Origin: Guillardia theta CCMP2712
Taxonomy: Eukaryota > Protista > Cryptophyta
Length of the DNA stretch: 64,000 bases
Assembly: GCF_000315625.1 (NCBI RefSeq)
Contig: NW_005434654.1
Location: forward strand, 864,593-928,592
Reading direction: 5' to 3'
This document shows, piece by piece, positions 12,300 through 59,098 of the stretch. The translations under genes were made by a program, and so were the position numbers. The notes under the pieces are model-generated. The model made no database searches. It saw only the letters and a list, made by a program, of their open reading frames with translations, and was not told the origin of the DNA. Within the stretch, counting starts at the first letter, position 1. Each line of letters begins with the position of its first letter.

Positions 12300-13560
12300 C
12301 AGAAGCGATGGCAGGATTGGCGTGGGGTGCGACGTTCAAGTAAGCGATTGTTCCACGACTTGGCATATTCTGAGTTTGATCAGATTCTGGGACGCGAGTA
12401 CTTGGTCCATGCCAGAGGTTTTTAGCAGGAATCTGTGAATGCAACATGCCGCCTCACTCGTTTCTACCAGTATGCCTTGTGGTCTGTGGTGATCCTGTTG
12501 GGGCTGGAGCTGATGAGCTACCTGGTGAATGAGATTCCTCAGAGGTTTTTCAACCCATCCGCCATCCCCATCAGGTCTGAAACCCTCGACCTCACTGAAG
12601 GGCTGTGATGGAGAAGCGCAGAGGGAAGCACCTGGACGTGCTATCATGGAAGGATATCAGTTTCATCACGTGGAACAAGTTCACCACCACGTGAGTCTCG
12701 TTTCTCTTGCAGTCGCAAATGACCCTCCTTAGGTTGTTCACCTATCACGCCCTTCGTTTCTGCTGGCTTAGCCCGCGGATCGCTTGGGTGTCTGCACGAT
12801 TGGCTGATCGACTTTCAGGCCACTGACAACGCTGATGCAGGGCTGGTCTGAGATGACAATTTTGAATACAGTCATCGCTTTCTTCTCATTGTTTGGTGAC
12901 TTTTATCCTTCACCTGACTTGTACATCTCAAGTGCTTGTGGGCAGTGGTTTACGATTTCTTCTACTGTATCTGGCACAGAATATTACACGTCAGGGGGCT
13001 GTACAAGTACGAAAAGATATCATGTCAAATGAAGAACTGAGTTTATCTGCAGATTCATTCACAAGCACCATCACCATCAGGTCTGTCTTCACGTCTTTCC
13101 TCTTCCCCCCTGATGCCTTGCCTGGGTTAGGCTGCGCCATCCCGAGGGAACGCAGGTGGATGAAAGCAATGGCGGAAAGGCTCCTGCTGACTTGCGGCAG
13201 ATGCCGTGAATGTTCATCCGATTGAATTCATCGTGGGGGAATACTGCCACCTCCTCGCCATCTTCATCATCCCGTAAGGCTGGTGTTGAGAGAATTGAGT
13301 CTCTCACATCTCAACAGATGCCATGCTGTTGTTGCTGCTGTCTTCGTCGTCCTGGGAGGGATTCTGGCATCTCTCAATCATACGGTATCTTCTCTTCCTA
13401 TTCTTTGCGCTCCTTTCCTCTACTCTCCTCTCCTTTACTCTACTCTACTCTGCTCTACTCTACTCTACTCTACTCTACTTTCGTGTTGATCCTGCTCGTG
13501 GTAGCGTTACGATATAGCGGTACCGCTGCTGTTCGATACGAAAGCTCACGACCAGCACCA
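12300..13560 (-). CDS. Possible hypothetical multi-exon gene
   Basis: Series of short open segments bounded by GT/AG-like sites (e.g. DDEDGEEVAVFPHDEFNRMNIHGIC, YSREIVNHCPQALEMY). No recognisable domain; limits are guessed. Confidence 0.25.
13418..13479. repeat. (CTCTA)n pentanucleotide microsatellite
   Basis: About 12 slightly imperfect units of tactc. Confidence 0.9.
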
Positions 13561-13785: not shown

Positions 13786-16700
13786 TTAGTGGTCATGGTC
13801 TGCCAAGGACTTCATCAGCCGTGCTGTCATCTTCTTAGTCTTGCTGTACGCGTCCTGCACTGACAGTTACCTCTCCTGCTTCCTCCCTCCCTCCCTCCGC
13901 TCACCATCGCCCCGAGAAGCCGCACGTCTCCTTCCTCCACAAGTTTCCTGCACTTTGCTACCTCATCTTCGCCAAGGACGTCCTGTTGAGGCGCGTCAAC
14001 TTTGACAAACACGTCGCTGACTTACCTTGAAGTCTTGGAAAGTATCCGCATCCTCCGCTCCCTTGTGCTTGACAGGCGTCAGATCCTGCTCTGCCTGCAA
14101 GACATCCGCAGGCTGCACGAGCTCGCGAGCTCCGTGTCTTCTGTTAAGGGCAAATCGCCCGATCATGCAGAGAAGCTGTATCCCTACGGCAGCGACGGCG
14201 CACAGGATGGGAGCGAAGGTAAGCCAGTACTGGAGCGTCGTGTTGTCTGCGACACGGTGAGCTGCGGCAAGCGACCTGGGAGCTTCTCACCTGGAGGTGT
14301 GAAGCTTGCTTTGATGTTAACTTTCGTGTTCCCAGACCCGACCAGCCTCCTGGAGTTCTGCACGGACAGAGTCTGCGGGCTCAAGGATCGTCTGGCGGAG
14401 GCTCCGGCAGCCTGCAGCTGTTTGTTGGTCAGCGGCAAGAGTTCTGAGAGGCTCAAAACCTGCTCGTAGCACGCGTTCGCTCGAGCTTGTCCAGGATCCA
14501 TTTGCAGCGATCCGAGCCCCGAGGTGTCGAAGAAGCACTGGACGTAGGTAGAGTTGTGCTTGACCTGAGCAGCCGTCACCATCGAGCTGGAGGCAAGGAA
14601 GACGCACCTCAGGAACGAAGGAGCCCTCGTTGAAGGGGAAGTAGACGATCTGATATAAGCCGTAGTACGGGAGACCGGTAGCCGGGTTAGTGGAGGAACC
14701 AGATGGTCCGACGGCGTAGCTGATGGTGATACCAACGTTTGTGTCCTGATTCCCTCCCAAGCACGGCAAGGTTGCGTCGTTGCCGACAGTCTGGCACAGC
14801 TCGAAGACGATGTCTTCCGAGCCGCTGGGATAGGCTGTGGGGTCTACTCGTAGGAAGTTGCCGTACTTGTCTCTGGTTTGCACGTACAAGGTTGAAGTCG
14901 CACCGGCAACGACGTTGAGGAGATCTCCGTACACGTAGGTCAGCGCGATCTCAGCTGGAGCGCTGGCGATCTCGAGCATGAAAGGAGATCCAGCTCCGCT
15001 CACCCCGGCGAAGGAGATGGAGACCATGTAGCTTCCTGATTGCGTCAAGCGGTAGGTCGTGCCGTAGCTGCCGTCAGCGTTGTCGACGACGTTTCCTGTG
15101 TTGGGGGAGGCCGAGGGGTTGAGAGGAGCTTGAGAGACTACATTCCACAGCGTCAGCAGCACGGAGACGGAGTCTCCACCGGGCCTTCGGTTGAGAAACT
15201 CGTCTCGAGCAGTGATGATGAAGCTTGACGACGTTCCTGCCGTCGAGATGGTGAGGAAGGTTCCCCGCGCCACAGAAGAGGACGGGGAGGTGACTGCCGG
15301 GGACACCACGAGGGTGTATGGGTTTGGATTCGTCTGGCTTGCGCTCGCATCGCCAGCAATGAGGTCCTGGTACTCCTGCCCCCCATTGCCGACGTAGATG
15401 GAGATGGTGTAGGTTCCGGCCTTGACGGGCGAGTATGCGGACTGATAGCTTCCCGAGCCAAGGGAGATGGTGGACGGGGACATGCTGGGGAGGTTGGTCC
15501 CTGTGACGTCGATCCTGAATCTAGCTCCATCTGCGCTTCTACCGAAGACGTCCTGCAACAAGACCATCGCAGGTCACTAGCACGCGCTGACCTCCGGCAG
15601 GTCTCACCCGACACGACAGCGAGAAGAAGGATTTCGATCCTGCAACCGCAGCCGTGAGGCCATCGCCACTGGCGCGGCAGCTCTTGTAGAAAGGCGTCTT
15701 GGTCTGGAACACGAAGAGGTCGCTGCTGTCCTTGGGCACGTCATCGACCACTTGTGTCCCTCCCTGCCCACCACAGGCGTCAGCACACTTGCAGCTTGAG
15801 AGTCACTCGGCTCACGAAGATGTAGATGTAGAGGTTGATGCTGTCGAGCTTGATGCTAGACGCGATGCTGCCTGAAGGCTTGCTGCCCGGAACATCCACC
15901 TGAGAACCTTTCAGCATGCCGAGCGACAGGAGCAGGTCAGCGTACCAGCACCCATGTCAGGCTCGTCGTGCACTTGCCTTGTTGGACGCAGGTAGAGTCG
16001 AGGTTGGTAAGGTTGAGATACCTGGGCGAGCTTGGAGGTCAGAGAACCCTCGAGGTGCGGAGTCGCTGCGATCAGGTACCATAAGTCGTTGAACGCCGTC
16101 GCGTAGGTGGGGAAGTTTCCGTTCATCAGGTCGTACATGCCTGAGCCGACGCATCCTTTGGCGTTGCCGCATCCGAACCCTCCATACACCAGCAGAACCC
16201 CGTTGCTGCTCGCTGAGTTGGACATGGTGGTAACGGCAGCATCCCTCCTCGCCTGGGGGCAGGCGCCTCCAGTGTGGCATGAGGTGTAGAGCTTGGCAAA
16301 GGTCGCCTGCTTGGAAGAGAAGAAAGTCGTGTGGACGTCGGAGCTGAGGTCCCATGTCGCGGTTCTGTTGGCGAGGTCGGTGGACTCTCCGCCGAACATC
16401 ATCAGGAGGAGGAACTGGGCAACATGGTCTGAGCCAGGGCCGCGAGAGCTCAAGGGGACTCACCTTTCCCTGCAGGTTCACAGACACGGTCGAGTGTCCA
16501 TGCAGCGGCCCTGGCAGTGAGCAGCTGGAGGTGCCCGCAGTACAGCCAGTGGGGTTGGAGGAGCCATAGCAGTAGGTGACTGACGAGGGCGGGGAGGTGA
16601 AGTTCTGACAGATGCCTCTCATGCACGCGCCTGCACACAGATGAACCAGTCAAGTCAAGGACAAGAGGGCGCGAGCGAGGGCGCTTACCTGACTTGCAGG

Positions 16701-19700
16701 AGCTCAGCTGGGAAAACTGTGCTGCTCCTCCAATCATGTAGTACTGCCCCAGATAGCTTGTCTTGGACCAGGTGGAGGTCTGCAGGAAAGAGTTGTTTGT
16801 GGCGTACGACCGCGTCATGTAAGTCTGCAGACTGTTTTGCCAGGAGGATGAGTCACTCAGACGTGTCATGATCTGGCGGAAGAGATCGCTTCCGGTGACG
16901 AAGGTGATGTTCAACCTGCTGTTAGAGAGGACCTGTGCGTTCAAGTTGTAGATGTAGCTCATGGACGTGGTTGCTACTGGTGGGTACTGCGGAGAAGGGA
17001 AGAAGTTGCTGGAGACGAAGCCGTAGAAGGTGCTGGAGTCGAAGGACGAGGTGACACCATTGAGGATCAGCGAGATCGTGTATCCGTTGTCAATCTTCGC
17101 AGTGTCGAGGTACCAGAAGTCTCCCAGCGCTTGTCCGTTCACGTCCACCCCTCCATAGATCAGCCCGGCCTGACTTCCGGATATGAACGCATCGTTGATG
17201 ATGGTGTGCAGGCAGCGCGCAGGGATGACGCTGTAAGCGCCGCTAGTTTGAAAGATGAGCTTGAACTGAGAGAGCTGATTGTTGTTGAAGACCAAGATAG
17301 CTGACGTCGAGGTGACCTGGTTGCTGGAGTCAGCGACGGCCCCTCGAGCTGCGAACGTCAGGCCTGGTTTGAAGTTGTTCAAGATGCCGCCATGGGACAC
17401 GAGGACAGTAGCAGTCTGATTGGCCTGGAAGGTGGTGAAAGCGAAGTAGGTCTTGACCTCGCTCTTCAAGCTCTGGTCCACGTTGGTCCACGACCGGCTG
17501 AAGAGGTCAAACTTCCAGAGGTCGTTGAGTCCCTTCTGATTCTGAGTGCCGCCCATCATGACCAGGGTGTACTCGTTGAGGCTTGCCAGACCCGCGTAGC
17601 TTCGCGAGGGAGGGCCTTCGGCAAGGACAGGAAGGTTGGAGAGAGCCTGCGACAGGCTCGAGGAAGAGACATCTACAGTGTAGATACTGTTGCTGAGAGA
17701 GTTTTGCACGAAGCCTCCGAACAGAATCGCATGCGTGGAGTTGGACACTTGCGAGAAGAAGCTGTGCACTGCACCGCTCATGGTATACGCCACGCGTTTC
17801 CCCACCAGGTACTCCAAGGCGTCAATGGTCATCGGATCAGAGATGGACGTCGTCAAGGAGTAGTTGCCGATCAGGGCAAGCGGCAGGAACTGCGAAGACA
17901 AGCCCCCGATGGTGTAGGCTTGATAGCCGGACGCCAAGCTGGCGTACATTGACAAGCCGACTCTGCCCTGTCCGGACGGGTTGATCTCGAGGAGGGTGAA
18001 GGGGCTGAAGCCTTTGAGCGCCTTCTGCAGGTCGAGCATCCAGAGGTCGTTGAGGGGGCTCGTCAAAGCGACGCACACTTGACTGGCGCCTGATGTCGAG
18101 TAGGTCGCGCACCCGATGCCTCCGTATATCAAGAGTTTGCTCTTGGAGACGGCAGCGGTGGCATGCCCGAAGCGAGCTGGGATCCAGCTCAGATCGAACA
18201 CCGTCGGCGAGCAAGTCGCGGAGCCTCCTGGACAGATCTGAAGGAATGGAGCTCTAGACGCGAACTTGGAGCTGTTTGCTTGCGTGTGGGTCAAGTAGCG
18301 CTCGAAGTCCGTCAAGGAGCTCATGGCGGGTCGGGTGGTGGGTAGGATGGAAGGCATCTTGGTAGCGGTGCCGCCTCCCATCACGATGGTCGACGAGCTA
18401 TGAGCTTGTTGGCTCGTGTAGCAAACCTTCTCCCCGCATGACTTTCCTGCCCCTCCCATGTCGCAGCACGGAACAACTGTCGTCGGAGCCCAGTAGGAGT
18501 AGGAGGAGTTGAGCTTGACTAGTGCACTCGAGTCAAGGAAGGAGGAGGGAGGGTCGACAGTAGCCCAGCCTTGAAGCGAGTCGTTGTACAGCGAGATGGC
18601 TGAGTATCCAGGGAGACAGATCTGCAGCGTGTCGGATGAGACGCATCCTCCCTGTCGTCTCATGGCGCTCTGATCTAGCTGAAAGGTCACCCACCCTTGC
18701 ATGCTCGAGCCATGCCAGGAGAACTCCAAGCTCGTTTGCTCGAGCCCAGAGAACTGCGACGAGCTTGGCAACGAGTTGTACATGCGCCGATCAAACCCAT
18801 TCGCTGGCCAAGTGAGAGACACTCGGGGGTTGATGTTGTTTGTGGTTGAGAGGTTTGTGATGTAGAGTGTGTCTGTGGTTGTCGTCTCGTACTGCAGTTG
18901 TATCGTGTCTTGCGAGAGGATCCACTCGTTGGAGGCGAGCAGACCGTTGGAGTTGGAGTAGACGACTTTCTGACTCGCTGGGTTGTACCTGCACATGGCA
19001 GCAGACGGGAAGCGAGGAGGTTGAGCGGTAGCACGGTTCTTGAGCGTGAGAGAGATATTCAAGTACAGCTCTTGGTTGCCATCTTGCTGCATGTCCGTGA
19101 TGATGTAGAAGGAGATCGTGCCCGTGCTCTGAGTCCACAACACCTGACCTGCAGTCGAGCTGCCGCCTGTCGCACTTATTCCGTCGCAATTGGACTTACA
19201 GGAAGCCTGCGGGTTGTTGACTCCGCTCCAGCTGCAGTAGGTCGAGGTAGGAGCCTTGCAGCTCACGTTCAACAGCGTATCGTTGCCAGCAGTCTGAGAG
19301 CCCACGAGCCCGGTGATGGTCACGTCGGTTCCTCCAGGCTGATTAACTTTGAAACCGTTCGAGCCTTGGTTGCCCTGGCTGGAGGAGAAGACAAACGACA
19401 GGGTGATCTGGTTGTCTGCACCATGGAGTCTGGTGGTCTCGTCGCCAGTGAATGAGAAGGGATAGTATGGGCTGCAGGATGGAGGACCTTGAGCCTGATT
19501 GCTCTGACTGTTCGAGTTGCTATTTGCAGACGAGCCTGGATTGCTTCCAGAAGAAGACGAATTTGAAGAGTTCGTTTGAGAGCCATTATGCGGGTTTGGC
19601 TGCTCTGCAAGAAGTTCGTAACGTACTTCAGCTGAAGGGTCCAGACCAAGTGCCTTGAGCGTCCTCGAGCCTGAGCTTTTGACCCCCTCTCGCTTGCGCC

Positions 19701-22700
19701 CATCCATCACCTCTCGTACAAACGACTCAAGCTCATCGATGCTTCTCAAGTCCTTCTTGTAGAGGACATGAGCCAGTGTCTGCTTGTCGCTTTTGCTTCT
19801 GAGCTGGTTCAGGTCTCCCCGGTACTGACCTGGTTGCATGCTGGCCGAGATGTTGCAGTCGATGATCACTCGGTCGTCTTGGGTGTATGTGACGTCGCAG
19901 TACATGCTGGGTGTAGAGCTCGAGCCCGGGGCTTGAGTATCTGGTCCCTTTGGTGTAGTCTGAGTGCAGGGGCATACTTGCTGAAGGGGATACGTGCTGG
20001 AGCCCGGTACGTCACAGTGCGTTGAGTTCTTGAAGTAGCAGATTCCCTGGGTGCTGCAACATGGGTCCTTGGTATTGTTTCCGCAATGGGACACGGGACA
20101 GGCAGATGGGCAAGTCCCTACGCCCGACGAGACTGAAGGCATCCCTCCGTACACGCCCGACATGGTCTTGGGGTCAAAGCAAGAGCACGTCCAGCTGATG
20201 CAGTAGCTCGAGGGGCACCAGTCCGGAGCGAACGAGTTGGTCTTTCCAGGGCCGCACTTGGGAAGAAAAGGAGGGCCGCCATTCTGCGAGCAGATGACTC
20301 CTTCGTCGGTGTATCCGATGTTGGGGTTACAAACCGAGCACACCCGATACAGATTGGTCGGGCACAGACAGGCTGGCACGTCCTTGGGGCAGTTCGGTAT
20401 GTCCTGGCACTGGCAGATACCGGTCTGCGAGATCGCAGTCTGAAAGCTCGTATCGCTCATTTGAGAGGCTGCACAGTCCGTGTCAAAGTACTCGCAGTTC
20501 CCGAAGGTACACGAGTCTGCACGGGGGCAGCCCGAGCAGTAGTCCGTCAAGTTTTGACTTTGACACTCCGAGCCTCCGCCGGTAGCTGTGTTCACGACCA
20601 GACCATTGCGAATGGGTTGATCAAACGTCAGCTCGATCAGAAGCAGGCTGCTGTACGAGGACCCGACCGACGTGTTGTACATGCTCTCCTTGACAGGCTT
20701 GGCAACGTGATGCATCTGCACGTCGTAGTCCTGCCATCATCATCAGCACACTGGCCATCCCGCGCACACGCTCATCGCAGAGTCTTGAGAGCACCTGCAT
20801 GGGAAGCCCGCTCACAGGATCTCGTGCAGCCGGCGTCCGCTTGCCAGTCTTGTCCATGGGGTACAGAAAGGCGTAGGGGTTACAGCGCGAGGGATCAGAA
20901 AGATCCGGGCATGCGGGCCACCAAAGACGGAAGTTATCAATGTAGCCTTTGAACAGCTTGAGCGTCTCCGAGGCCGCCGGGTTTCCCCCTCCGATGTAGA
21001 TGTCGGAGATGCCCTGTGACAAGCGGAGGGAGTTGCTGATGTCAAGAGACAAGAAGTTCCTTCCCTGCTCTGACACGCTGCTGCCGTCAAGAAACATGAA
21101 TGCTTGCGTCAGCACAGCGTCGGGATAGGGGTTGGTCTGTGAGTAGAGCCTACCAAACCTCAGCGTGAAGCACACATGGTGCCACACGCCCAGCACGCTG
21201 CTTGGTATCGGGCCCCAAGTCTTCACCACCACGTCCTGACTATCCGGCAAGAGCGTCAGCCTCACGAAGAGACTGTTGCCCGAGGCATAAACAGTCCAGC
21301 GCAGCAACGACAGTACCCCGTTGTAGGCATCAAGCAGCACAACGCCAGCTGGATCTTGGCTTTGAAGTTGTACCCACATGTCGATCCACAGCGTCCCCAA
21401 GCCCGTCGATGACTGGCACCTACACACCCGTCATGCAGGACCTCGCGCATCAGCTGCTGGCTTACCAGGAAGGCAGGGTCATGGCTATGATGCTGGTGAT
21501 CCCATCGAAGCTTGCCATCTTGTCTTTGGCGCTCGACTCCTGAGACATCCAGCCCTCTGTCAGTACCAAGCATCGCTCTCACGAGCAGGCGCTTACCGCT
21601 TCTGCCGAGTCCATGACCCACAAGTCATTCCTGGGCTGAGGGAGGTTGCAGCTCCCTTGCTTGCCCGGACAGTCGATGGACGCTCCTCCGAACAAGACGA
21701 TGGGCTTCAAGTACTGTCCGAACGACTCCATGACTGTCAGGGTAGCGAACGCGCGATCCGTCGGCCACGAGCTTGCTGTTTGAACCTGCTTCCATTCCAG
21801 GGTGAACATGCTCAGACTCCACATCGTGCTGGTGCTCTGGAACCCCGGGATAGACCCGGCTGCGTTCGAGCATTGAGACCCTGCTAGTCGAAGACCGCCG
21901 AAGACAAACTGGTATGATCCCTCGCTCGTGTACGCCGCAAACACGAGCGGCTCGGGGGCGTACACCTGAAGCGGCTTGGCCGCGCACGAGGCATCCGTAC
22001 CGTAGATGCATCGCCAAGTCTGAGCAGAAAGATCGAGGGCCCAGAGGTCTTGGAAGATCTCCTGCTCAGACATCCCTTGAGCAACGTACATGGTCGATGA
22101 CGTCGAGTCATAGAACGCGACGTGCCCACACCGAGCCGAGGGGCTGTTTCCGGTCTGCAGCGCTGCAGCAGCGTATCAGACACTCGACCAGCAAGGGCGC
22201 AGCCCCGCCCGTCACCTGACTGCCAGCCGCTGGATGTCTTGAACAAGGCCAGGTGACCAGCCGCCAAGGAGTCCTTGTCAAGACCGCCGAAGATCATCAC
22301 CTCCGTCGAAGAGATTACGCCGCTCGATATGTAGCTCGCGAGCGGCGACGCGTCTGACGACCCGTACTGACTCCACACGAGAGTCAGGATGTCGAACATC
22401 CATGTATCCGACAGGACCTGTGACATGTACATCAGCGCATGGCGCCATGACCCCGCCAGCATCCCCGACACGAGAGTCCAAGACTTACCGAGGATGCTCC
22501 CACGCCTTCGGGGCCTTGCCCGCCGTGTACATAGATCTGAAACCCGGCCATCCACATGGCGTGGTATGCTCGAGCCGATGGTGAGGCCGAGATGGGCATG
22601 ATTTCTACCCATCGCGCGGCTGATCGATTGGTGTACTGCTTGAGCACCCAGAAGCTGGACTGAGGGGTCTGCGATTCCCCATCGTCTACTATCCCGTCAA

Positions 22701-23550
22701 AGACAAAGAGCTCCTGCAGACTGACATGGAATGCACTGGCGTGCCCATGCCGAGGATGGGGGAGTAGAGAGCTTGTGGGGTTGCAGCTGCTCCATGTCCG
22801 CGTGGTAGGAGAGGACACGTTGAGGTACCAGCAGTCGTTCAGACTCTTGCCCACGGCCATCCCCACTCCCCCGAAGACGAAAACAACTTGATTCCTGTCG
22901 TCATATGCCATGCTATGGCCGTACCGGTTCTCGGGCCCAGGCCCGTCGAACCGCATCGGGTCCCACGTGGGTTGCGGGCTGATGATAAACCTCCAGCAGT
23001 CTAGCAGCCCTCTCCCCATGGATGATTTCTGCGGTGTCGCGAAGCCTCCGCACAGGAGGGCCGACGCCCCCACCGATATCATCGTATGCTGTGCACGCGG
23101 GCCGGGGACATGCCGGTTGATGGTGCTCGCAGCACACTGAGCATCGTAGATCGTATGGTTCGGGAAGAAGACTACTTCCTCCCAGCTGTTGGCTGCCGAG
23201 TCATACTTCCAAGTATCCCCAAGCACTACCATGGCGCTTCCTATGTTGTTGATCCTGCAAGCAGTACAGTGAGTCGCACGGGGCAGTGCAGGTCAGGCTT
23301 GTACATACCCGCCATGGAGGAAGACGAAGCCTTCAGAAGTGCTGAGCGTTGTAGTGGCGTAAGCGTAGCGAGGGGACGGACCGGATCCACCGGGCTGGAT
23401 GAGCTGCCATTGGAGAGCTAGAGGGAAGAGGGGTTAAGCAGGCACAGGATGGGGGGCAGGCAGCCGGTACTTACGGAGGGCGAAGGTAGAGACGGAGAGA
23501 GACAAGACAAGGAGGAGTCGGAATCTTATTGTGCTTCGATAATTTCTCAT
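13786..23550 (-). CDS. Giant kelch/LamG/Cys-rich/filamin type-I membrane protein, short-linker copy (A); ~18 exons, ~3,000 aa
   Basis: ATG at 23550 gives MRNYRSTIRFRLLLVLSLSVSTFA-LPLQW (signal peptide). Kelch motifs (PSPRYAY, VFVFGG, NDCW, PARFGHA, LNDLW), LamG-like (GVWHHVCFTL...FKGYIDNFRLW), Cys-rich block, filamin-type repeats (FIITARDEFLNRRPGGD, VVDNADGSYGTTY), TM (WLTFAPILCAVAAVGIQLLCMIG), tail ending ...MKSLADHDH* with TAA at 13786-13788. Confidence 0.85.
13793..23508. repeat. Left arm of giant inverted repeat (9.7 kb)
   Basis: Reverse complement of 24663-34888. Paired coordinates sum to 48171 in the inner block and 48684 in the outer block (48681 at the far end after two small intronic indels); mirrored ORFs are visible throughout the ORF track. 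Confidence 0.97.
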
Positions 23551-24626
23551 TTCCTTTTTTCGGGAGTGTGGAATCGGCAATGAATTTAAACAACAATCAG
23601 GTTACAAGAGCGCAGGTCACGGAAGAAAATGCAGTGAAGAACAATGGAGAATTAATTGATTAGTGGAAAAATTTGTAGCGCATGGTTATCTTCATGCATT
23701 TTTCTTCTCCGTTCTCCTTGTTCTACCCATCCTGATCAGGCCATGATATCGGTATTTTAACTGCTGTGAGGGACGCAAATGGTTGTAGTGAGGATCGAAT
23801 TGATGAAAATATTTCTCTTTTGGAAATCAGTGAAATGTGAAGTGTGACTATGATTGAAATTTAGTACAGATATTTGAAAATTTTGCCATTGCAAGATTCG
23901 TGATTTTGCAACGATTTCGAAGAAAGGATCCATCATTTGGCTTTAAGTAATATTTTACAGTACCAAGAGCTTGAATGGTTTTACTCCTGGCCTGCAAATC
24001 GGAAGGGTCATTTTTCCGGACGGGGTCAGATCACAATTGAGTTGATAGATGAGGTGCTGATTTTTAACTTAACTTTGAGTAAAAGATGAGGTGCTAGTTA
24101 TTACTACTGACTCAGTGAATAACTGCTTTTTTCTTTTTCTTGTCTGCGGGCCCCGAAAGACCCCCGTAAAGTGCCCGGCAGGTACCCCTAGACACCCCTA
24201 CCCCCTACCCCACCCCCCGCTCCCCTATCCTTCATGTAAAAGTCACCAGGTATACTTCAATGTTAAAGTCCCAGTGTGACTTATCGGTTCCAGCAACCCT
24301 ACCCCATGGATCGAGGTAAAACTGACCCCTCCCTTGCTCCTCTCCCCTCGCATTTTCCGCACAATCAAACCGCGATCATGTCCCCGTTGTCTCAGTCATC
24401 CCAGCCTCCTTTGAGCTTCAGGCACGAAGCAAACACTCATTGACTACATTCATCCAAGTTGATTCCTTACCAGTCCACGACTAGTTGCTTCAAAAACATC
24501 CTATCTCAATATCTAACAGTTCTCGAACAAGAACTGATACTTTAGGAACACATCACTTTTGTAGAGATTCCTTGCGGGTAAGACATGTATTGAATACAGA
24601 CTTCGTGCTGAAACCAATACCCGAGA
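23551..24626. promoter_or_regulatory. Unique 1.08-kb divergent (bidirectional) promoter region between the two start codons
   Basis: AT-richer non-coding spacer directly upstream of both ATGs (23550 minus, 24627 plus). No long ORF. Role inferred from position only. Confidence 0.6.
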
Positions 24627-27600
24627 ATGACAGAATATAATACTATCTTTGAAACAATCATCGTCTTGTCTCTCTCCGTCTCTACCTTCGCCCTCCGTAA
24701 GTACCGGCTGCCTGCCCCCCATCCTGTGCCTGCTTAACCCCTCTTCCCTCTAGCTCTCCAATGGCAGCTCATCCAGCCCGGTGGATCCGGTCCGTCCCCT
24801 CGCTACGCCTACGCCACTACAACGCTCAGCACTTCTGAAGGCTTCGTCTTCCTCCATGGCGGGTATGTACAAGCCTGACCTGCACTCCCCCGTGCGACTC
24901 ACTGTACTGCTTGCAGGATCAACAACATAGGAAGCTCCATGGTAGTGCTTGGGGATACTTGGAAGTATGACTCGGCAGCCAACAGCTGGGAGGAAGTAGT
25001 CTTCTTCCCGAACCATACGATCTACGATGCTCAGTGTGCTGCGAGCACCATCAACCGGCATGTCCCCGGCCCGCGTGCACAGCATACGATGATATCGGTG
25101 GGGGCGTCGGCCCTCCTGTGCGGAGGCTTCGCGACACCGCAGAAATCATCCATGGGGAGAGGGCTGCTAGACTGCTGGAGGTTTATCATCAGCCCGCAAC
25201 CCACGTGGGACCCGATGCGGTTCGACGGGCCTGGGCCCGAGAACCGGTACGGCCATAGCATGGCATATGACGACAGGAATCAAGTTGTTTTCGTCTTCGG
25301 GGGAGTGGGGATGGCCGTGGGCAAGAGTCTGAACGACTGCTGGTACCTCAACGTGTCCTCTCCTACCACGCGGACATGGAGCAGCTGCAACCCCACAAGC
25401 TCTCTACTCCCCCATCCTCGGCATGGGCACGCCAGTGCATTCCATGTCAGTCTGCAGGAGCTCTTTGTCTTTGACGGGATAGTAGACGATGGGGAATCGC
25501 AGACCCCTCAGTCCAGCTTCTGGGTGCTCAAGCAGTACACCAATCGATCAGCCGCGCGATGGGTAGAAATCATGCCCATCTCGGCCTCACCATCGGCTCG
25601 AGCATACCACGCCATGTGGATGGCCGGGTTTCAGATCTATGTACACGGCGGGCAAGGCCCCGAAGGCGTGGGAGCATCCTCGGTAAGTCTTGGACTCTCG
25701 TGTCGGGGATGCTGGCGGGGTCATGGCGCCATGCGCTGATGTACATGTCACAGGTCCTGTCGGATACATGGATGTTCGACATCCTGACTCTCGTGTGGAG
25801 TCAGTACGGGTCGTCAGACGCGTCGCCGCTCGCGAGCTACATATCGAGCGGCGTAATCTCTTCGACGGAGGTGATGATCTTCGGCGGTCTTGACAAGGAC
25901 TCCTTGGCGGCTGGTCACCTGGCCTTGTTCAAGACATCCAGCGGCTGGCAGTCAGGTGACGGGCGGGGCTGCGCCCTTGCTGGTCGAGTGTCTGATACGC
26001 TGCTGCAGCGCTGCAGACCGGAAACAGCCCCTCGGCTCGGTGTGGGCACGTCGCGTTCTATGACTCGACGTCATCGACCATGTACGTTGCTCAAGGGATG
26101 TCTGAGCAGGAGATCTTCCAAGACCTCTGGGCCCTCGATCTTTCTGCTCAGACTTGGCGATGCATCTACGGTACGGATGCCTCGTGCGCGGCCAAGCCGC
26201 TTCAGGTGTACGCCCCCGAGCCGCTCGTGTTTGCGGCGTACACGAGCGAGGGATCATACCAGTTTGTCTTCGGCGGTCTTCGACCAGCAGGGTCTCAATG
26301 CTCGAACGCAGCCGGGTCTATCCCGGGGTTCCAGAGCACCAGCACGATGTGGAGTCTGAGCATGTTCACCCTGGAATGGAAGCAGGTTCAAACAGCAAGC
26401 TCGTGGCCGACGGATCGCGCGTTCGCTACCCTGACAGTCATGGAGTCGTTCGGACAGTACTTGAAGCCCATCGTCTTGTTCGGAGGAGCGTCCATCGACT
26501 GTCCGGGCAAGCAAGGGAGCTGCAACCTCCCTCAGCCCAGGAATGACTTGTGGGTCATGGACTCGGCAGAAGCGGTAAGCGCCTGCTCGTGAGAGCGATG
26601 CTTGGTACTGACAGAGGGCTGGATGTCTCAGGAGTCGAGCGCCAAAGACAAGATGGCAAGCTTCGATGGGATCACCAGCATCATAGCCATGACCCTGCCT
26701 TCCTGGTAAGCCAGCAGCTGATGCGCGAGGTCCTGCATGACGGGTGTGTAGGTGCCAGTCATCGACGGGCTTGGGGACGCTGTGGATCGACATGTGGGTA
26801 CAACTTCAAAGCCAAGATCCAGCTGGCGTTGTGCTGCTTGATGCCTACAACGGGGTACTGTCGTTGCTGCGCTGGACTGTTTATGCCTCGGGCAACAGTC
26901 TCTTCGTGAGGCTGACGCTCTTGCCGGATAGTCAGGACGTGGTGGTGAAGACTTGGGGCCCGATACCAAGCAGCGTGCTGGGCGTGTGGCACCATGTGTG
27001 CTTCACGCTGAGGTTTGGTAGGCTCTACTCACAGACCAACCCCTATCCCGACGCTGTGCTGACGCAAGCATTCATGTTTCTTGACGGCAGCAGCGTGTCA
27101 GAGCAGGGAAGGAACTTCTTGTCTCTTGACATCAGCAACTCCCTCCGCTTGTCACAGGGCATCTCCGACATCTACATCGGAGGGGGAAACCCGGCGGCCT
27201 CGGAGACGCTCAAGCTGTTCAAAGGCTACATTGATAACTTCCGTCTTTGGTGGCCCGCATGCCCGGATCTTTCTGATCCCTCGCGCTGTAACCCCTACGC
27301 CTTTCTGTACCCCATGGACAAGACTGGCAAGCGGACGCCGGCTGCACGAGATCCTGTGAGCGGGCTTCCCATGCAGGTGCTCTCAAGACTCTGCGATGAG
27401 CGTGTGCGCGGGATGGCCAGTGTGCTGATGATGATGGCAGGACTACGACGTGCAGATGCATCACGTTGCCAAGCCTGTCAAGGAGAGCATGTACAACACG
27501 TCGGTCGGGTCCTCGTACAGCAGCCTGCTTCTGATCGAGCTGACGTTTGATCAACCCATTCGCAATGGTCTGGTCGTGAACACAGCTACCGGCGGAGGCT

Positions 27601-30600
27601 CGGAGTGTCAAAGTCAAAACTTGACGGACTACTGCTCGGGCTGCCCCCGTGCAGACTCGTGTACCTTCGGGAACTGCGAGTACTTTGACACGGACTGTGC
27701 AGCCTCTCAAATGAGCGATACGAGCTTTCAGACTGCGATCTCGCAGACCGGTATCTGCCAGTGCCAGGACATACCGAACTGCCCCAAGGACGTGCCAGCC
27801 TGTCTGTGCCCGACCAATCTGTATCGGGTGTGCTCGGTTTGTAACCCCAACATCGGATACACCGACGAAGGAGTCATCTGCTCGCAGAATGGCGGCCCTC
27901 CTTTTCTTCCCAAGTGCGGCCCTGGAAAGACCAACTCGTTCGCTCCGGACTGGTGCCCCTCGAGCTACTGCATCAGCTGGACGTGCTCTTGCTTTGACCC
28001 CAAGACCATGTCGGGCGTGTACGGAGGGATGCCTTCAGTCTCGTCGGGCGTAGGGACTTGCCCATCTGCCTGTCCCGTGTCCCATTGCGGAAACAATACC
28101 AAGGACCCATGTTGCAGCACCCAGGGAATCTGCTACTTCAAGAACTCAACGCACTGTGACGTACCGGGCTCCAGCACGTATCCCCTTCAGCAAGTATGCC
28201 CCTGCACTCAGACTACACCAAAGGGACCAGATACTCAAGCCCCGGGCTCGAGCTCTACACCCAGCATGTACTGCGACGTCACATACACCCAAGACGACCG
28301 AGTGATCATCGACTGCAACATCTCGGCCAGCATGCAACCAGGTCAGTACAGGGGAGACCTGAACCAGCTCAGAAGCAAAAGCGACAAGCAGACACTGGCT
28401 CATGCCCTCTACAAGAAGGACTTGAGAAGCATCGATGAGCTTGAGTCGTTTGTACGAGAGGTGATGGATGGGCGCAAGCGAGAGGGGGTCAAAAGCTCAG
28501 GCTCGAGGACGCTCAAGGCACTTGGTCTAGACCCTTCAGCTGAAATAAGTTACCAGCTAGATGTCCTTCATCCGTCTGCCAATCACAATGGAACTGCCAC
28601 AACGACAACGTCGTCGAACAGCTCGTCGTCTTCGTCATCATCGAACAGCTCGTCGTCTTCGTCATCATCGAACAGCTCGTCGTCTTCGTCATCATCGAAC
28701 AGCTCGTCGTCTTCGTCATCATCGAACAGCTCGTCGTCTTCGTTGTCATCGAACAGCTCGTCGTCTTCGTCGTCATCGAACAGCTCATCGTCGTCGTCAT
28801 TGTCGAATACATCATCCACCGGTTCGGTGAGCAAGCATACCACCAGTGATTCATCCTCAAACTCGTCTTCTGCCAGTTCGTCGAACCATACTGCTAATAC
28901 CAGCTCCACCACTACCTCAAATGACAAGACAACTACAATAAGTGGAGGTCAATCGTCCGGTGAATCATCAGGCAACAGCTCAAACACCAGCACTACTTCA
29001 AATGACCAGACGAACAATGTTGGAAACTCTCATTTGCCAGCAAGTAACTCAGAGTCAGAATTGTCCACCAACAGCACAACCTCAAATCATTCATCGTCAA
29101 AAAATAACCATACTACAGGCTTGTCTGAATCTTCTGGAAGCAATCCAGGCTCGTCTGCAAATAGCAATTCGAACAGTCAGAGCAATCAGGCTCAAGGTCC
29201 TCCATCCTGCAGCCCATACTATCCCTTCTCATTCACTGGCGACGAGACCACCAGACTCCATGGTGCAGACAACCAGATCACCCTGTCGTTTGTCTTCTCC
29301 TCCAGCCAGGGCAACCAAGGCTCGAACGGTTTCAAAGTTAATCAGCCTGGAGGAACCGACGTGACCATCACCGGGCTCGTGGGCTCTCAGACTGCTGGCA
29401 ACGATACGCTGTTGAACGTGAGCTGCAAGGCTCCTACCTCGACCTACTGCAGCTGGAGCGGAGTCAACAACCCGCAGGCTTCCTGTAAGTCCAATTGCGA
29501 CGGAATAAGTGCGACAGGCGGCAGCTCGACTGCAGGTCAGGTGTTGTGGACTCAGAGCACGGGCACGATCTCCTTCTACATCATCACGGACATGCAGCAA
29601 GATGGCAACCAAGAGCTGTACTTGAATATCTCTCTCACGCTCAAGAACCGTGCTACCGCTCAACCTCCTCGCTTCCCGTCTGCTGCCATGTGCAGGTACA
29701 ACCCAGCGAGTCAGAAAGTCGTCTACTCCAACTCCAACGGTCTGCTCGCCTCCAACGAGTGGATCCTCTCGCAAGACACGATACAACTGCAGTACGAGAC
29801 GACAACCACAGACACACTCTACATCACAAACCTCTCAACCACAAACAACATCAACCCCCGAGTGTCTCTCACTTGGCCAGCGAATGGGTTTGATCGGCGC
29901 ATGTACAACTCGTTGCCAAGCTCGTCGCAGTTCTCTGGGCTCGAGCAAACGAGCTTGGAGTTCTCCTGGCATGGCTCGAGCATGCAAGGGTGGGTGACCT
30001 TTCAGCTAGATCAGAGCGCCATGAGACGACAGGGAGGATGCGTCTCATCCGACACGCTGCAGATCTGTCTCCCTGGATACTCAGCCATCTCGCTGTACAA
30101 CGACTCGCTTCAAGGCTGGGCTACTGTCGACCCTCCCTCCTCCTTCCTTGACTCGAGTGCACTAGTCAAGCTCAACTCCTCCTACTCCTACTGGGCTCCG
30201 ACGACAGTCGTGCCGTGCTGCGACATGGGAGGGGCAGGAAAGTCATGCGGGGAGAAGGTTTGCTACACGAGCCAACAAGCTCATAGCTCGTCGACCATCG
30301 TGATGGGAGGCGGCACCGCTACCAAGATGCCTTCCATCCTACCCACCACCCGACCCGCCATGAGCTCCTTGACGGACTTCGAGCGCTACTTGACCCACAC
30401 GCAAGCAAACAGCTCCAAGTTCGCGTCTAGAGCTCCATTCCTTCAGATCTGTCCAGGAGGCTCCGCGACTTGCTCGCCGACGGTGTTCGATCTGAGCTGG
30501 ATCCCAGCTCGCTTCGGGCATGCCACCGCTGCCGTCTCCAAGAGCAAACTCTTGATATACGGAGGCATCGGGTGCGCGACCTACTCGACATCAGGCGCCA

Positions 30601-33600
30601 GTCAAGTGTGCGTCGCTTTGACGAGCCCCCTCAACGACCTCTGGATGCTCGACCTGCAGAAGGCGCTCAAAGGCTTCAGCCCCTTCACCCTCCTCGAGAT
30701 CAACCCGTCCGGACAGGGCAGAGTCGGCTTGTCACTGTACGCCAGCTTGGCGTCCGGCTATCAAGCCTACACCATCGGGGGCTTGTCTTCGCAGTTCCTG
30801 CCGCTTGCCCTGATCGGCAACTACTCCTTGACGACGTCCATCTCTGATCCGATGACCATTGACGCCTTGGAGTACCTGGTGGGGAAACGCGTGGCGTATA
30901 CCATGAGCGGTGCAGTGCACAGCTTCTTCTCGCAAGTGTCCAACTCCACGCATGCGATTCTGTTCGGAGGCTTCGTGCAAAACTCTCTCAGCAACAGTAT
31001 CTACACTGTAGATGTCTCTTCCTCGAGCCTGTCGCAGGCTCTCTCCAACCTTCCTGTCCTTGCCGAAGGCCCTCCCTCGCGAAGCTACGCGGGTCTGGCA
31101 AGCCTCAACGAGTACACCCTGGTCATGATGGGCGGCACTCAGAATCAGAAGGGACTCAACGACCTCTGGAAGTTTGACCTCTTCAGCCGGTCGTGGACCA
31201 ACGTGGACCAGAGCTTGAAGAGCGAGGTCAAGACCTACTTCGCTTTCACCACCTTCCAGGCCAATCAGACTGCTACTGTCCTCGTGTCCCATGGCGGCAT
31301 CTTGAACAACTTCAAACCAGGCCTGACGTTCGCAGCTCGAGGGGCCATCGCTGACTCCAGCAACCAGGTCACCTCGACGTCAGCTATCTTGGTCTTCAAC
31401 AACAATCAGCTCTCTCAGTTCAAGCTCATCTTTCAAACTAGCGGCGCTTACAGCGTCATCCCTGCGCGCTGCCTGCACACCATCATCAACGATGCGTTCA
31501 TATCCGGAAGTCAGGCCGGGCTGATCTATGGAGGGGTGGACGTGAACGGACAAGCGCTGGGAGACTTCTGGTACCTCGACACAGCGAAGATTGACAACGG
31601 ATACACGATCTCGCTGATCCTCAATGGTGTCACCTCGTCCTTCGACTCCAGCACCTTCTACGGCTTCGTCTCCAGCAACTTCTTCCCTTCTCCGCAGTAC
31701 CCACCAGTAGCAACCACGTCCATGAGCTACATCTACAACTTGAATGCACAAGTCCTCTCTAACAGCAGGTTGAACATCACCTTCGTCACCGGAAGCGATC
31801 TCTTCCGCCAGATCATGACACGTCTGAGTGACTCATCCTCCTGGCAAAACAGTCTGCAGACTTACATGACGCGGTCGTACGCCACAAACAACTCTTTCCT
31901 GCAGACCTCCACCTGGTCCAAGACAAGCTATCTGGGGCAGTACTACATGATTGGAGGAGCAGCACAGTTTTCCCAGCTGAGCTCCTGCAAGTCAGGTAAG
32001 CGCCCTCGCTCGCGCCCTCTTGTCCTTGACTCGACTGGTTCATCTGTGTGCAGGCGCGTGCATGAGAGGCATCTGTCAGAACTTCACCTCCCCGCCCTCG
32101 TCAGTCACCTACTGCTATGGCTCCTCCAACCCCACTGGCTGTACTGCGGGCACCACCAGCTGCTCACTGCCAGGGCCGCTGCATGGACACTCGACCGTGT
32201 CTGTGAACCTGCAGGGAAAGGTGAGTCCCCTTGAGCTCTCGCGGCCCTGGCTCAGACCATGTTGCCCAGTTCCTCCTCCTGATGATGTTCGGCGGAGAGT
32301 CCACCGACCTCGCCAACAGAACCGCGACATGGGACCTCAGCTCCGACGTCCACACGACTTTCTTCTCTTCCAAGCAGGCGACCTTTGCCAAGCTCTACAC
32401 CTCATGCCACACTGGAGGCGCCTGCCCCCAGGCGAGGAGGGATGCTGCCGTTACCACCATGTCCAACTCAGCGAGCAGCAACGGGGTTCTGCTGGTGTAT
32501 GGAGGGTTCGGATGCGGCAACCCCAAAGGATGCGTCGGCTCAGGCATGTACGACCTGATGAACGGAAACTTCCCCACCTACGCGACGGCGTTCAACGACT
32601 TATGGTACCTGATCGCAGCGACTCCGCACCTCGAGGGTTCTCTGACCTCCAAGCTCGCCCAGGTATCTCAACCTTACCAACCTCGACTCTACCTGCGTCC
32701 AACAAGGCAAGTGCACGACGAGCCTGACATGGGTGCTGGTACGCTGACCTGCTCCTGTCGCTCGGCATGCTGAAAGGTTCTCAGGTGGATGTTCCGGGCA
32801 GCAAGCCTTCAGGCAGCATCGCGTCTAGCATCAAGCTCGACAGCATCAACCTCTACATCTACATCTTCGTGAGCCGAGTGACTCTCAAGCTGCAAGTGTG
32901 CTGACGCCTTTGGTGGGCAGGGAGGGACACAAGTGGTCGATGACGTGCCCAAGGACAGCAGCGACCTCTTCGTGTTCCAGACCAAGACGCCTTTCTACAA
33001 GAGCTGCCGCGCCAGTGGCGATGGCCTCACGGCTGCGGTTGCAGGATCGAAATCCTTCTTCTCGCTGTCGTGTCGGGTGAGACCTGCCGGAGGTCAGCGC
33101 GTGCTAGTGACCTGCGATGGTCTTGTTGCAGGACGTCTTCGGTAGAAGCGCAGATGGAGCTAGATTCAGGATCGACGTCACAGGGACCAACCTCCCCAGC
33201 ATGTCCCCATCCACCATCTCCCTTGGCTCGGGAAGCTATCAGTCCGCATACTCGCCCGTCAAGGCCGGAACCTACACCATCTCCATCTACGTCGGCAAAG
33301 GGGGGCAGGAGTACCAGGACCTCATTGCCGGCGATGCGAGCGCAAGCCAGACGAATCCAAACCCATACACCCTCGTGGTGTCCCCGGCAGTCACTTCCCC
33401 GTCCTCTTCTGTGGCGCGGGGAACCTTCCTCACCATCTCGACGGCAGGAACGTCGTCAAGCTTCATCATCACTGCTCGAGACGAGTTTCTCAACCGAAGG
33501 CCCGGTGGAGACTCCGTCTCCGTGCTGCTGACGCTGTGGAATGTAGTCTCTCAAGCTCCTCTCAACCCCTCGGCCTCCCCCAACACAGGAAACGTCGTCG

Positions 33601-34940
33601 ACAACGCTGACGGCAGCTACGGCACGACCTACCGCTTGACGCAATCAGGAAGCTACATGGTCTCCATCTCCTTCGCCGGGGTGAGCGGAGCTGGATCTCC
33701 TTTCATGCTCGAGATCGCCAGCGCTCCAGCTGAGATCGCGCTGACCTACGTGTACGGAGATCTCCTCAACGTCGTTGCCGGTGCGACTTCAACCTTGTAC
33801 GTGCAGACCAGAGACAAGTACGGCAACTTCATACGAGTAGACCCCACAGCCTATCCCAGCGGCTCGGAAGACATCGTCTTCGAGCTGTGCCAGACTATCG
33901 GCAACGACGCAACCTTGCCGTGCTTGGGAGGGAATCAGGACACAAACGTTGGTATCACCATCAGCTACGCCGTCGGACCATCTGGTTCCTCCACTAACCC
34001 GGCTACCGGTCTCCCGTACTACGGCTTATATCAGATCGTCTACTTCCCCTTCAACGAGGGCTCCTTCGTTCCTGAGGTGCGTCTTCCTTGCCTCCAGCTC
34101 GATGGTGACGGCTGCTCAGGTCAAGCACAACTCTACCTACGTCCAGTGCTTCTTCGACACCTCGGGGCTCGGATCGCTGCAAATGGATCCTGGACAAGCT
34201 CGAGCGAACGCGTGCTACGAGCAGGTTTTGAGCCTCTCAGAACTCTTGCCGCTGACCAACAAACAGCTGCAGGCTGCCGGAGCCTCCGCCAGACGATCCT
34301 TGAGCCCGCAGACTCTGTCCGTGCAGAACTCCAGGAGGCTGGTCGGGTCTGGGAACACGAAAGTTGACATCAAAGCAAGCTTCACACCTCCAGGTGAGAA
34401 GCTCCCAGGTCGCTTGCCGCAGCTCACCGTGTCGCAGACAACACGACGCTCCAGTACTGGCTTACCTTCGCTCCCATCCTGTGCGCCGTCGCTGCCGTAG
34501 GGATACAGCTTCTCTGCATGATCGGGCGATTTGCCCTTAACAGAAGACACGGAGCTCGCGAGCTCGTGCAGCCTGCGGATGTCTTGCAGGCAGAGCAGGA
34601 TCTGACGCCGGTCAAGCACAAGGGAGCGGAGGATGCGGATACTTTCCAAGACTTCAAGGTGAAGTCGGCGACGTGTTTGTCAAAGTTGACGCGCCTCAAC
34701 AGGACGTGCTTGGCGAAGATGAGGTAGCAAAGTGCAGGAAACTTGTGGAGGAAGGAGACGTGCGGCTTCTCGGGGCGATGGTGAGCGGAGGGAGGGAGGA
34801 AGCAGGAGAGGTAACTGTCAGTGCAGGACGCGTACAGCAAGACTAAGAAGATGACAGCACGGCTGATGAAGTCCTTGGCAGACCATGAAGAATCAACGGT
34901 TACACATTTGAGAATCCCTCCGTCGGCATGTGTTGAGTAG
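24627..34940 (+). CDS. Giant kelch/LamG/Cys-rich/filamin type-I membrane protein, long-linker copy (B); ~18 exons, ~3,150 aa
   Basis: ATG at 24627 gives MTEYNTIFETIIVLSLSVSTFA-LPLQW in frame. About 17 GT-AG introns (e.g. 24697-24753, 24863-24916, 27377-27440, 31996-32053, 34659-34702, 34781-34826). Same domains as copy A plus a 171-aa longer Ser/Asn/Thr linker. Ends ...MKSLADHEESTVTHLRIPPSACVE* (TAG 34938-34940). Confidence 0.85.
24663..34888. repeat. Right arm of giant inverted repeat (10.2 kb)
   Basis: Matches the reverse complement of 13793-23508 except for the segment 28545-29129 and scattered substitutions. Confidence 0.97.
28614..28808 (+). repeat. Coding 27-bp tandem repeat (TCGAACAGCTCGTCGTCTTCGTCATCA) x7 encoding SNSSSSSSS
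   Basis: Units start at 28614, 28641, 28668, 28695, 28722, 28749 and 28776; the first four are identical and the last three degenerate. Confidence 0.95.
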
Positions 34941-59000: not shown

Positions 59001-59098
59001 TCAAGTTTGACTTCATGGAAGGTCAATCACATTCTTTTCCTCTCGACGAGGCGATCGAGATCGAGAGCGAGGATGAGAGCGAGGAAGACAAGCAGTAA
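56030..59098 (+). CDS. Intronless 1022-aa hypothetical membrane protein (globular N-terminus, helical bundle, two TM helices, charged tail)
   Basis: Uninterrupted 3,069-bp ATG-initiated ORF. Hydrophobic segments VMWAVKLLFVVILFSKLA and FGFGAAFVIASLLVALTVNSISF follow a long amphipathic helical region. Confidence 0.85.
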   Translation: MNKTQDEELSESSASDEESQDEEPGRDRGNRLADITGEDFNFTWSSDHVLLCALISFYGKCSLHPAEPESWIRSTPLQVLIFECISSGVLDFDYAPVLTYVSHRGTSKRIWLNLSQEAQSALDDLQENNVIRVLKMYTEDHKPSSCFQVSPIGIRMLKNVPASLFDELKHVVYVPDKQNSFKDKLQIEWRAEVGKFALNSLKTGFSRYSAITDIEDVSYVSSPFIPNYLRRSKEPLTSNLNRAVEAFRGKTNIMDADLMEAISLGNVRITLQEWIPFGENSLTYISTNIGVKDRCQFARFSSQKLTDFTGNNMSTDTGLTDVKILDFSEQKFLNVEAEIKYPEEEGIVQVEFFGIHVSARGHILFGLEIESIMTRMKDDISIDLLSRTIVDIMQDSSTIIESILTENQKDLLFSLFQQSLHLRPKYNCFLAQKIDPLFLSFSQYMDGGDHENEIAQLIGSVRSGHDLAKQHFLFVGSTGILLVGEQAHEYDSFLVPYCSLQSLQLITGVLFECFNHLNSLIDEGLRLLQELESNPYNVARIQFVMTHSFKELHKLDLVLKHISDSIKEAAMPPEPRNDIGYKLLAVLKCRKTQRILNARLIALRNSFEEAIKKIRFIERRITSVNRNRLVKHVKSSSSNFERIIINSVTFFNNANVMWAVKLLFVVILFSKLASKFRIGSSYCKVVPMAKNFTNLVAGSVQYTFIDPPNQTYSEDCPWINPVQLKLNEYPFGFGAAFVIASLLVALTVNSISFHYFKYFKRRFANGLKGWRVGFQDVKASRTAYRVEANVPISQEALVRYLKGKVMLKSSMRQVDHQIEAKSNMKEYEWQESRRFIFKQKTIDVLFRLDTTLSKLMTVMITCDKRVGYGYIEKQWNQLRKTMIARGVLIDSDDIRSARLTSTTRDKTIKSMGNTQGRQVARKWKKEKAEDNAKKRRQRKSRAETRAIRDRIVRRLDENSKSSIREIQSIAAEEVVLEPKEMNIEEMKLKNVKFDFMEGQSHSFPLDEAIEIESEDESEEDKQ

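Follow-up and report, generated by a model that had tools for sequence, protein, structure and literature searches.

The stretch of DNA considered here (64,000 nt of contig NW_005434654.1 of the cryptophyte Guillardia theta CCMP2712, positions 864,593 to 928,592 of the forward strand, referred to below at its full length as the window) carries two inverted copies of one 12-exon gene, which together form a palindrome of 21,096 nt (13793-34888). The locus is best filed as an inverted pair of paralogues under concerted evolution, an arrangement of a known kind, whose distinctive twist is that the boundary between arm and spacer cuts through exon 1. At a probability of roughly 0.7, we favor a history in which an old head-to-head pair of paralogues has been kept alike by gene conversion and in which inversion of the DNA between the arms is a rare, unregulated by-product. 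A preliminary description of this DNA had drawn the same architecture of 3.9-kb inner blocks, 5.8-kb outer blocks, a variable segment and a spacer, and its geometry agrees with the measured values to within a few bases; it had gone on to suggest that the spacer might be an invertible switch, a possibility that is weighed below. The parts of the palindrome and the provisional coding spans that run through them are as follows:

13793-19554, minus strand: outer arm of copy A, with the remainder of exon 8, exons 9-12 and ~200 nt beyond the stop codon
19555-19612, minus strand: short linker of copy A, 58 nt, in frame
19613-23513, minus strand: inner arm of copy A, with exons 1-7 and the first part of the large exon 8, which encode domains of Kelch propeller and LamG-like type
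23514-24657, no strand assigned: unique spacer, the divergent intergenic region, 1,144 nt
24658-28558, plus strand: inner arm of copy B (repeat search, exact comparison, Pfam)
28559-29129, plus strand: long linker of copy B, 571 nt, 190 codons, rich in Ser, Thr and Asn, open in frame
29130-34888, plus strand: outer arm of copy B (repeat search, exact comparison, Pfam, exon model)
13996-23550, minus strand: provisional coding span of copy A, ~2,942 amino acids in 12 exons, from exon chaining in the sequence
24627-34727, plus strand: provisional coding span of copy B, ~3,124 amino acids in 12 exons, likewise from exon chaining

The evidence for gene conversion lies in the number and the distribution of the differences between the arms. 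By exact count, the inner arms (19613-23513 versus 24658-28558) differ by 13 mismatches in 3,901 nt (99.67% identity) and the outer arms (14024-19554 versus 29130-34660) by 21 mismatches in 5,531 nt (99.62% identity), the latter reaching out to 13793 and 34888, for a total of ~5.76 kb, if two indels (1 nt and 4 nt) are allowed. Arms that are kilobases long and 99.6% identical cannot have originated by chance, and the genome search (which, like all the genome-wide searches reported here, covered one assembly of 87,145,349 bases in 669 contigs) found two copies of the gene only. The mismatches of the inner block are crowded at its ends, since 12 of the 13 are no farther than 300 nt from an edge (P = 2e-9; when the mismatches that define the edges are left out, P = 8e-5), and the central 3.3 kb of this block holds a single mismatch where the density in the outer block would predict 12.5 (P = 5e-5). 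The center of the inner block is about tenfold less diverged than the outer block, along which the mismatches are evenly spread (Kolmogorov-Smirnov P = 0.27), and no similarity was found between the two flanks that lie outside the palindrome. Because this distribution bears the signature of conversion, it is evident that the arms have recombined with each other. Within this one genome we find together inverted arms of >99% identity, a unique spacer and an arm identity that is apparently younger than the duplication itself.

The 12-exon models were chained from the DNA alone with a script of our own and are provisional; they were used for translation, for the ratio of nonsynonymous to synonymous differences per site (pN/pS) and for hydropathy. 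A single common model leaves both copies open, with the blocks in register. Exon by exon, matches to Pfam run from Kelch propeller repeats through a LamG-like domain and more Kelch repeats to filamin-type Ig repeats, with the second set of Kelch repeats, the filamin-type Ig repeats and a transmembrane helix encoded by the outer arms; the hydropathy profile reaches its maximum in a window of 19 residues ~70-85 residues short of the C-terminus, after which come basic residues. Each gene reads as encoding a type I membrane protein of ~3,000 residues with a huge ectodomain, and the predicted order of its parts is signal peptide, Kelch, LamG-like domain, Ser-rich linker, Kelch, filamin-type Ig, one transmembrane helix and a short tail, a protein that might fairly be placed at the cell surface. 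Between the two copies, pN/pS is 0.25, from 11 nonsynonymous and 14 synonymous changes, a departure from neutrality with P = 6e-4; codon 67 (Ser/Ala, at 24936/23235) is one of the sites that tell the copies apart. The 190 codons of the long linker are free of stops in the coding frame (shuffling test, P = 5e-4), the other two frames holding 2 and 8 stop codons. Both copies thus behave as live genes, as would be expected from purifying selection on the differences between them and from the openness of so long a linker. As an observation in its own right, the one inner-block mismatch that lies in the central 3.3 kb (26285 in copy B, 21886 in copy A) coincides with position -3 of a presumed 3' splice site, which would read CAG in copy B and TAG in copy A; retention of the intron at this site would give a stop codon in copy A and none in copy B.

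Three regions of the pair stand apart from this close identity. At the center of the palindrome, the spacer contains the opening 12-14 codons of each gene, the two start codons being separated by 1,076 nt, measured from ATG to ATG. The preliminary description had held that this unique DNA contains both ATGs and all of the upstream sequence, and this is borne out: the first in-frame Met codons after a stop lie at 23550 (minus strand) in copy A and at 24627 (plus strand) in copy B, and each first exon runs from spacer into arm:

23475-23550, minus strand: exon 1 of copy A, the short-linker gene, encoding MRNYRSTIRFRLLL and then the common VLSLSVSTFAL, with a GTAAGT donor
24627-24696, plus strand: exon 1 of copy B, the long-linker gene, encoding MTEYNTIFETII and then the common VLSLSVSTFAL, with a GTAAGT donor at 24697

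Two promoters presumably lie in the spacer, which is single-copy in the assembly save for one dispersed motif of 31 nt. Its halves exhibit no inverted similarity above chance (local score 20, with 20.6 +/- 2.3 for shuffled sequences), they differ in GC content (0.38 on the left, 0.46 on the right), and a search of the spacer against Rfam gave no match. Nor do the two 5' coding stubs (23514-23550 and 24627-24657) exhibit homology above chance (P about 0.14). The second region is the linker. Its first ~27 residues are recognizable but strongly diverged homologues in the two copies (VRYELLAEQPNPHNGSQTNSSNSSSS versus ISYQLDVLHPSANHNGTATTTTSSNSSSS), although the adjoining DNA is 99.6% identical, and the linker of copy B includes a 27-nt tandem repeat in seven copies (28614-28807). 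The third region is the extreme C-terminal tail, which is changed by a 1-nt indel in the last exon (34661 in copy B versus 14023/14024 in copy A); copy A ends ...FKVSQRRVCQS and copy B ends ...FKVKSATCLSKLTRLNRTCLAKMR, so that the tail beyond ...DFKV extends for 9-10 residues in the former and for about 22 in the latter.

We propose that intrachromosomal gene conversion between the inverted copies holds the constrained coding blocks at ~99.6% identity, while the poorly constrained parts (the promoter region and initial 12-14 codons, the linker of low complexity and the 3' flank) would have drifted or been kept apart. The diverged parts would now bound the conversion tracts, with homogenization stopping wherever homology is lost, and the unique spacer with its two ATGs would be the intergenic DNA, now diverged, of two genes that are transcribed away from each other. 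Such a spacer is what the passive decay of unconstrained flanks around a homogenized coding region should leave behind. That the pair is old, and neither a young duplication nor a designed cassette, is argued by the diverged linkers, the unrelated spacer halves, 5' coding stubs and outer flanks, the uneven distribution of mismatches and the indications of purifying selection. In this scheme, an occasional intrachromatid crossover might invert the spacer alone or the inner unit in its entirety and so create in-frame chimeras of promoter, linker and tail. Inversion would be mechanistically available to the locus because conversion implies that the arms pair and exchange DNA, most recently in the inner block, and it has probably taken place at some point in the lineage. 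We would expect it, however, to be a rare and unregulated by-product and not a programmed switch. The layout is real and may flip by ordinary recombination, but it is most likely an ordinary one.

Several considerations weigh against this interpretation. The evidence comes from one genome, and the classical proof of concerted evolution, arms that are more alike within genomes than between them, calls for a comparison of genomes. That inversion is rare is presumed from findings in yeast and human and not in G. theta, and two working promoters are assumed. Copy A has a net charge of +4 ahead of its hydrophobic core, as in a classical basic signal-peptide start, whereas the corresponding charge in copy B is -2, an acidic and atypical start for a signal peptide. 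Finally, the long linker persists in spite of conversion on both sides of it, which may reflect selection for two isoforms; isoforms selected in this way would fit a functional device as well as they would fit plain subfunctionalization.

A different origin for the layout might be a young inverted duplication of ~0.4% divergence that has undergone no conversion, with a breakpoint inside exon 1 that joined the gene to foreign upstream DNA. One copy would then have kept the ancestral promoter and start, the foreign DNA would have supplied an in-frame ATG to the other, and the linker would have changed later through repeat expansion. Such an event would account for the lack of homology between the spacer halves and between the 5' coding stubs, for the atypical N-terminus of copy B and for the sevenfold 27-nt tandem expansion in the linker of that copy; we estimate the chance of meeting an ATG before a stop upstream of such a breakpoint at ~1 in 4. 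It is nonetheless rather unlikely, since linker starts with many replacements over ~27 residues, beside DNA that is 99.6% identical, are hard to reconcile with a timescale of 0.4%, and since neither the clustering of mismatches at the edges nor the tenfold lower divergence of the inner center is expected after one event. A concern of another type is that two alleles, or a collapsed repeat, were misplaced by the assembler as an inverted pair. With one difference in the central 3.3 kb, reads of Sanger length (the method by which the genome was sequenced) would presumably be too short to connect the spacer with either linker, leaving the orientation in the assembly dependent on mate pairs. The printed orientation consequently says little about the uniformity of the culture, because short reads cannot make this link across the inner block. 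The existence of the two copies is another matter. There are no N bases in the 64 kb of the window, the genome holds exactly two matches, and the spacer ends and outer flanks are unrelated to each other, so that the copies do not represent alleles; over the outer block the 21 differences are evenly distributed, and the assembler could therefore keep the copies apart. An outright assembly artefact is unlikely, and of all the explanations weighed here it is the one to which we give the least credence.

The proposal that the locus works as a switch accepts the same layout and the same exchange between arms, but supposes that crossovers in the inner block flip the promoter-bearing spacer often or inducibly. 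In such recombinase-free phase variation, a clonal population would be a mixture of cells with the short-linker and the long-linker surface protein, the two promoters being unequal, and crossovers in the outer block would add variants of the tail and the 3' untranslated region (3' UTR). Much of what the preliminary description had claimed on this score stands. Its statement that a crossover in the inner block would exchange the promoter and the signal-peptide start between the gene bodies is geometrically sound, as the arms are homologous and in register; in the outer block, a crossover would indeed swap whatever precedes it, linkers included, relative to the tails and 3' ends, which truly differ as a result of the indel at 34661 and of the unlike 3' flanks; and the expectation that all products stay in frame, with up to four isomers of the locus, holds on paper, given that the common 12-exon model is open in both copies. 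The geometry is therefore right for a switch, the arms recombine, their latest exchanges having taken place in the inner block, where a crossover would flip the spacer, and the unrelated 5' ends with their different charges are unlikely to be equivalent. Inversion switches that depend on homologous recombination are also known, the starvation-inducible MAT locus of Ogataea being an example (PMC4238957, PMC5720833). The same layout, however, is expected from the passive concerted evolution of a divergent gene pair, and comparable repeats invert at ~1e-5 per generation or less. The neighboring genes are ordinary, and no centromere or telomere landmark, which the yeast systems require, is evident near the locus, although no search was aimed at one. 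After cleavage of the signal peptide the mature proteins would be identical, so that a flip of the spacer would change regulation only. Judged by such base rates, a function in phase variation seems improbable, somewhat more so than a young duplication. The more specific version, in which one side of the spacer has the active promoter and the inner block flips at a measurable and perhaps stress-raised rate, toggling between surface proteins with a short and a long mucin-like linker, is slightly more improbable again. The preliminary description had also remarked that no recombinase is visible in the window, and this agrees with our findings: none of the ten largest open reading frames (ORFs) outside the palindrome matches a recombinase or transposase domain in Pfam, and the repeats are kilobases long and not short sites.

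The nearest known counterpart of the locus under the interpretation that we prefer, that of a conversion-homogenized pair, might be the flip/flop region of Saccharomyces chromosome XIV (YNL018C/YNL034W), where a ~4-kb inverted repeat of paralogous genes is likewise homogenized by conversion and where inversion comes about through ordinary homologous recombination without a dedicated recombinase (PMC9731477). That repeat has been continually homogenized and has been re-inverted many times in evolution, but about 53,800 mitoses and 950 meioses passed without a flip (PMC9731477). The genes of the yeast repeat lie wholly within the arms, and its inversion carries 24 kb with 15 other genes (PMC9731477), whereas in G. 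theta only a 1.1-kb piece with promoters and first codons would flip, thereby re-pairing the 5' ends with the gene bodies; moreover, both orientations are seen in Saccharomyces, while we have one orientation from one assembly. The palindromes of primate sex chromosomes also resemble the locus in their unique spacers and in arms that are kept at >99% identity by conversion, and they undergo rare inversions of spacer or arm by intrachromatid crossover (PMC3723533, PMC8327919). For the human Y palindrome P6, there were 3 inversions versus 56 conversions, or about 1.5e-5 inversions per generation (PMC3723533). Primate palindromes are tens to hundreds of kb in size, however, and their genes lie inside the arms with none straddling the boundary between arm and spacer, whereas the palindrome described here has a single gene per arm and internal islands of divergence.

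Closer to the idea of a switch are the mating-type flip-flops of Ogataea polymorpha and Komagataella phaffii, in which a reversible inversion takes place between inverted repeats on the scale of kilobases, no site-specific recombinase being known (PMC4238957, PMC5720833). These programmed inversions need induction and a silencing landmark beside one of the repeats (PMC4238957, PMC5720833), and they differ from the G. theta locus in that a locus is moved next to a silencing centromere or telomere in response to starvation through a defined pathway. Switches that are operated by site-specific invertases (fim, hin and the shufflons) arrive at the same outcome, an altered surface protein through the inversion of promoter or coding DNA, but do so with a dedicated recombinase and short inverted sites, neither of which was seen here among the ten largest flanking ORFs or in the repeat search. 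In the sap locus of Campylobacter fetus, a promoter segment reportedly inverts between opposed S-layer gene cassettes, as is said to have been shown experimentally by Dworkin and Blaser in the 1990s, with recombination in the conserved 5' coding region by way of the general recombination machinery. This would be the mode of the proposed switch, with opposed homologous surface-protein genes around an invertible promoter; the sap locus differs from the G. theta locus in being bacterial and in having a single one-way promoter and several cassettes with large variable parts. If a switch with one active promoter were at work in G. theta, it would represent a eukaryotic system that works like the C. 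fetus sap locus, and if the spacer were found to flip usefully often, the result would be a rare case of surface-protein variation in a eukaryote, a free-living alga, by recombinase-free promoter inversion. The inverted pair also illustrates concerted evolution in a compact and clean form, the coding blocks being homogenized while three islands (5' end, linker and tail) escape. Because the boundary between arm and spacer runs through exon 1, any crossover would re-pair the 5' ends with the gene bodies, and the locus also offers a convenient natural means of measuring how often inversion happens relative to conversion in a cryptophyte.

Relatives of the gene were found both inside and outside the assembly. 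A protein with an ENA source (P0001, from a 3.7-kb contig) is 97% identical to exon 3 and then continues into intron-like sequence; it looks genomic, and would be a copy of the gene from a very close relative in a public assembly. The match to P0002 in the protein word search, at 40%, is paralogue-like. Protein word searches that took exon 3, its initial 100 residues or residues 1-380 of the large exon as the query turned up no transcript-derived protein from G. theta, and scans of JGI metagenomes with the exon 3 protein and with the spliced junction of exons 1 and 2 were blank, in a collection from which the records of this genome may be excluded. A literature search on nuclear palindromes in Guillardia found nothing. 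In the assembly itself, the N-terminal Kelch exon has four paralogues at 38-43% identity (L011-L014 in our list, with contigs numbered C):

C68:115988-116767: N-terminal Kelch exon paralogue
C68:175945-176721: N-terminal Kelch exon paralogue
C40:171731-172504: N-terminal Kelch exon paralogue
C31:234868-235626: N-terminal Kelch exon paralogue

The two on contig C68 lie 60 kb apart in divergent orientation. With respect to the ancestral N-terminus, the first exons of these four paralogues of ~40% identity are too diverged to align with either start.

The dispersed motif that interrupts the uniqueness of the spacer was located by the genome search:

24057-24087, plus strand: one copy of a 31-nt dispersed motif that resembles a miniature inverted-repeat transposable element (MITE) or a terminal inverted repeat

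The genome contains at least 30 copies of this motif (CTGATTTTTAACTTAACTTTGAGTAAAAGAT), with identities of 90-100%. At other loci it is preceded by TGTCCTCGTA, and at one locus it has an inverted partner ~100 nt away, in the manner of a MITE end. Within 24048-24095, the copy in the spacer is flanked by an 11-nt direct repeat, GATGAGGTGCT, and sits on the geometric center of the palindrome (24085.5), a coincidence with a chance of ~5%.

The largest ORFs that flank the palindrome include those for a glycosyltransferase, a Na/H exchanger, a leucine-rich repeat (LRR) protein, a DUF2838 protein and a kinesin, the others having no Pfam match. An open frame of 1,022 residues at 56030-59095 (plus strand) is without a match in Pfam. 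A (CTCTA)n microsatellite of ~12 copies lies at 13410-13479, ~300 nt outside the outer end of the arm of copy A.

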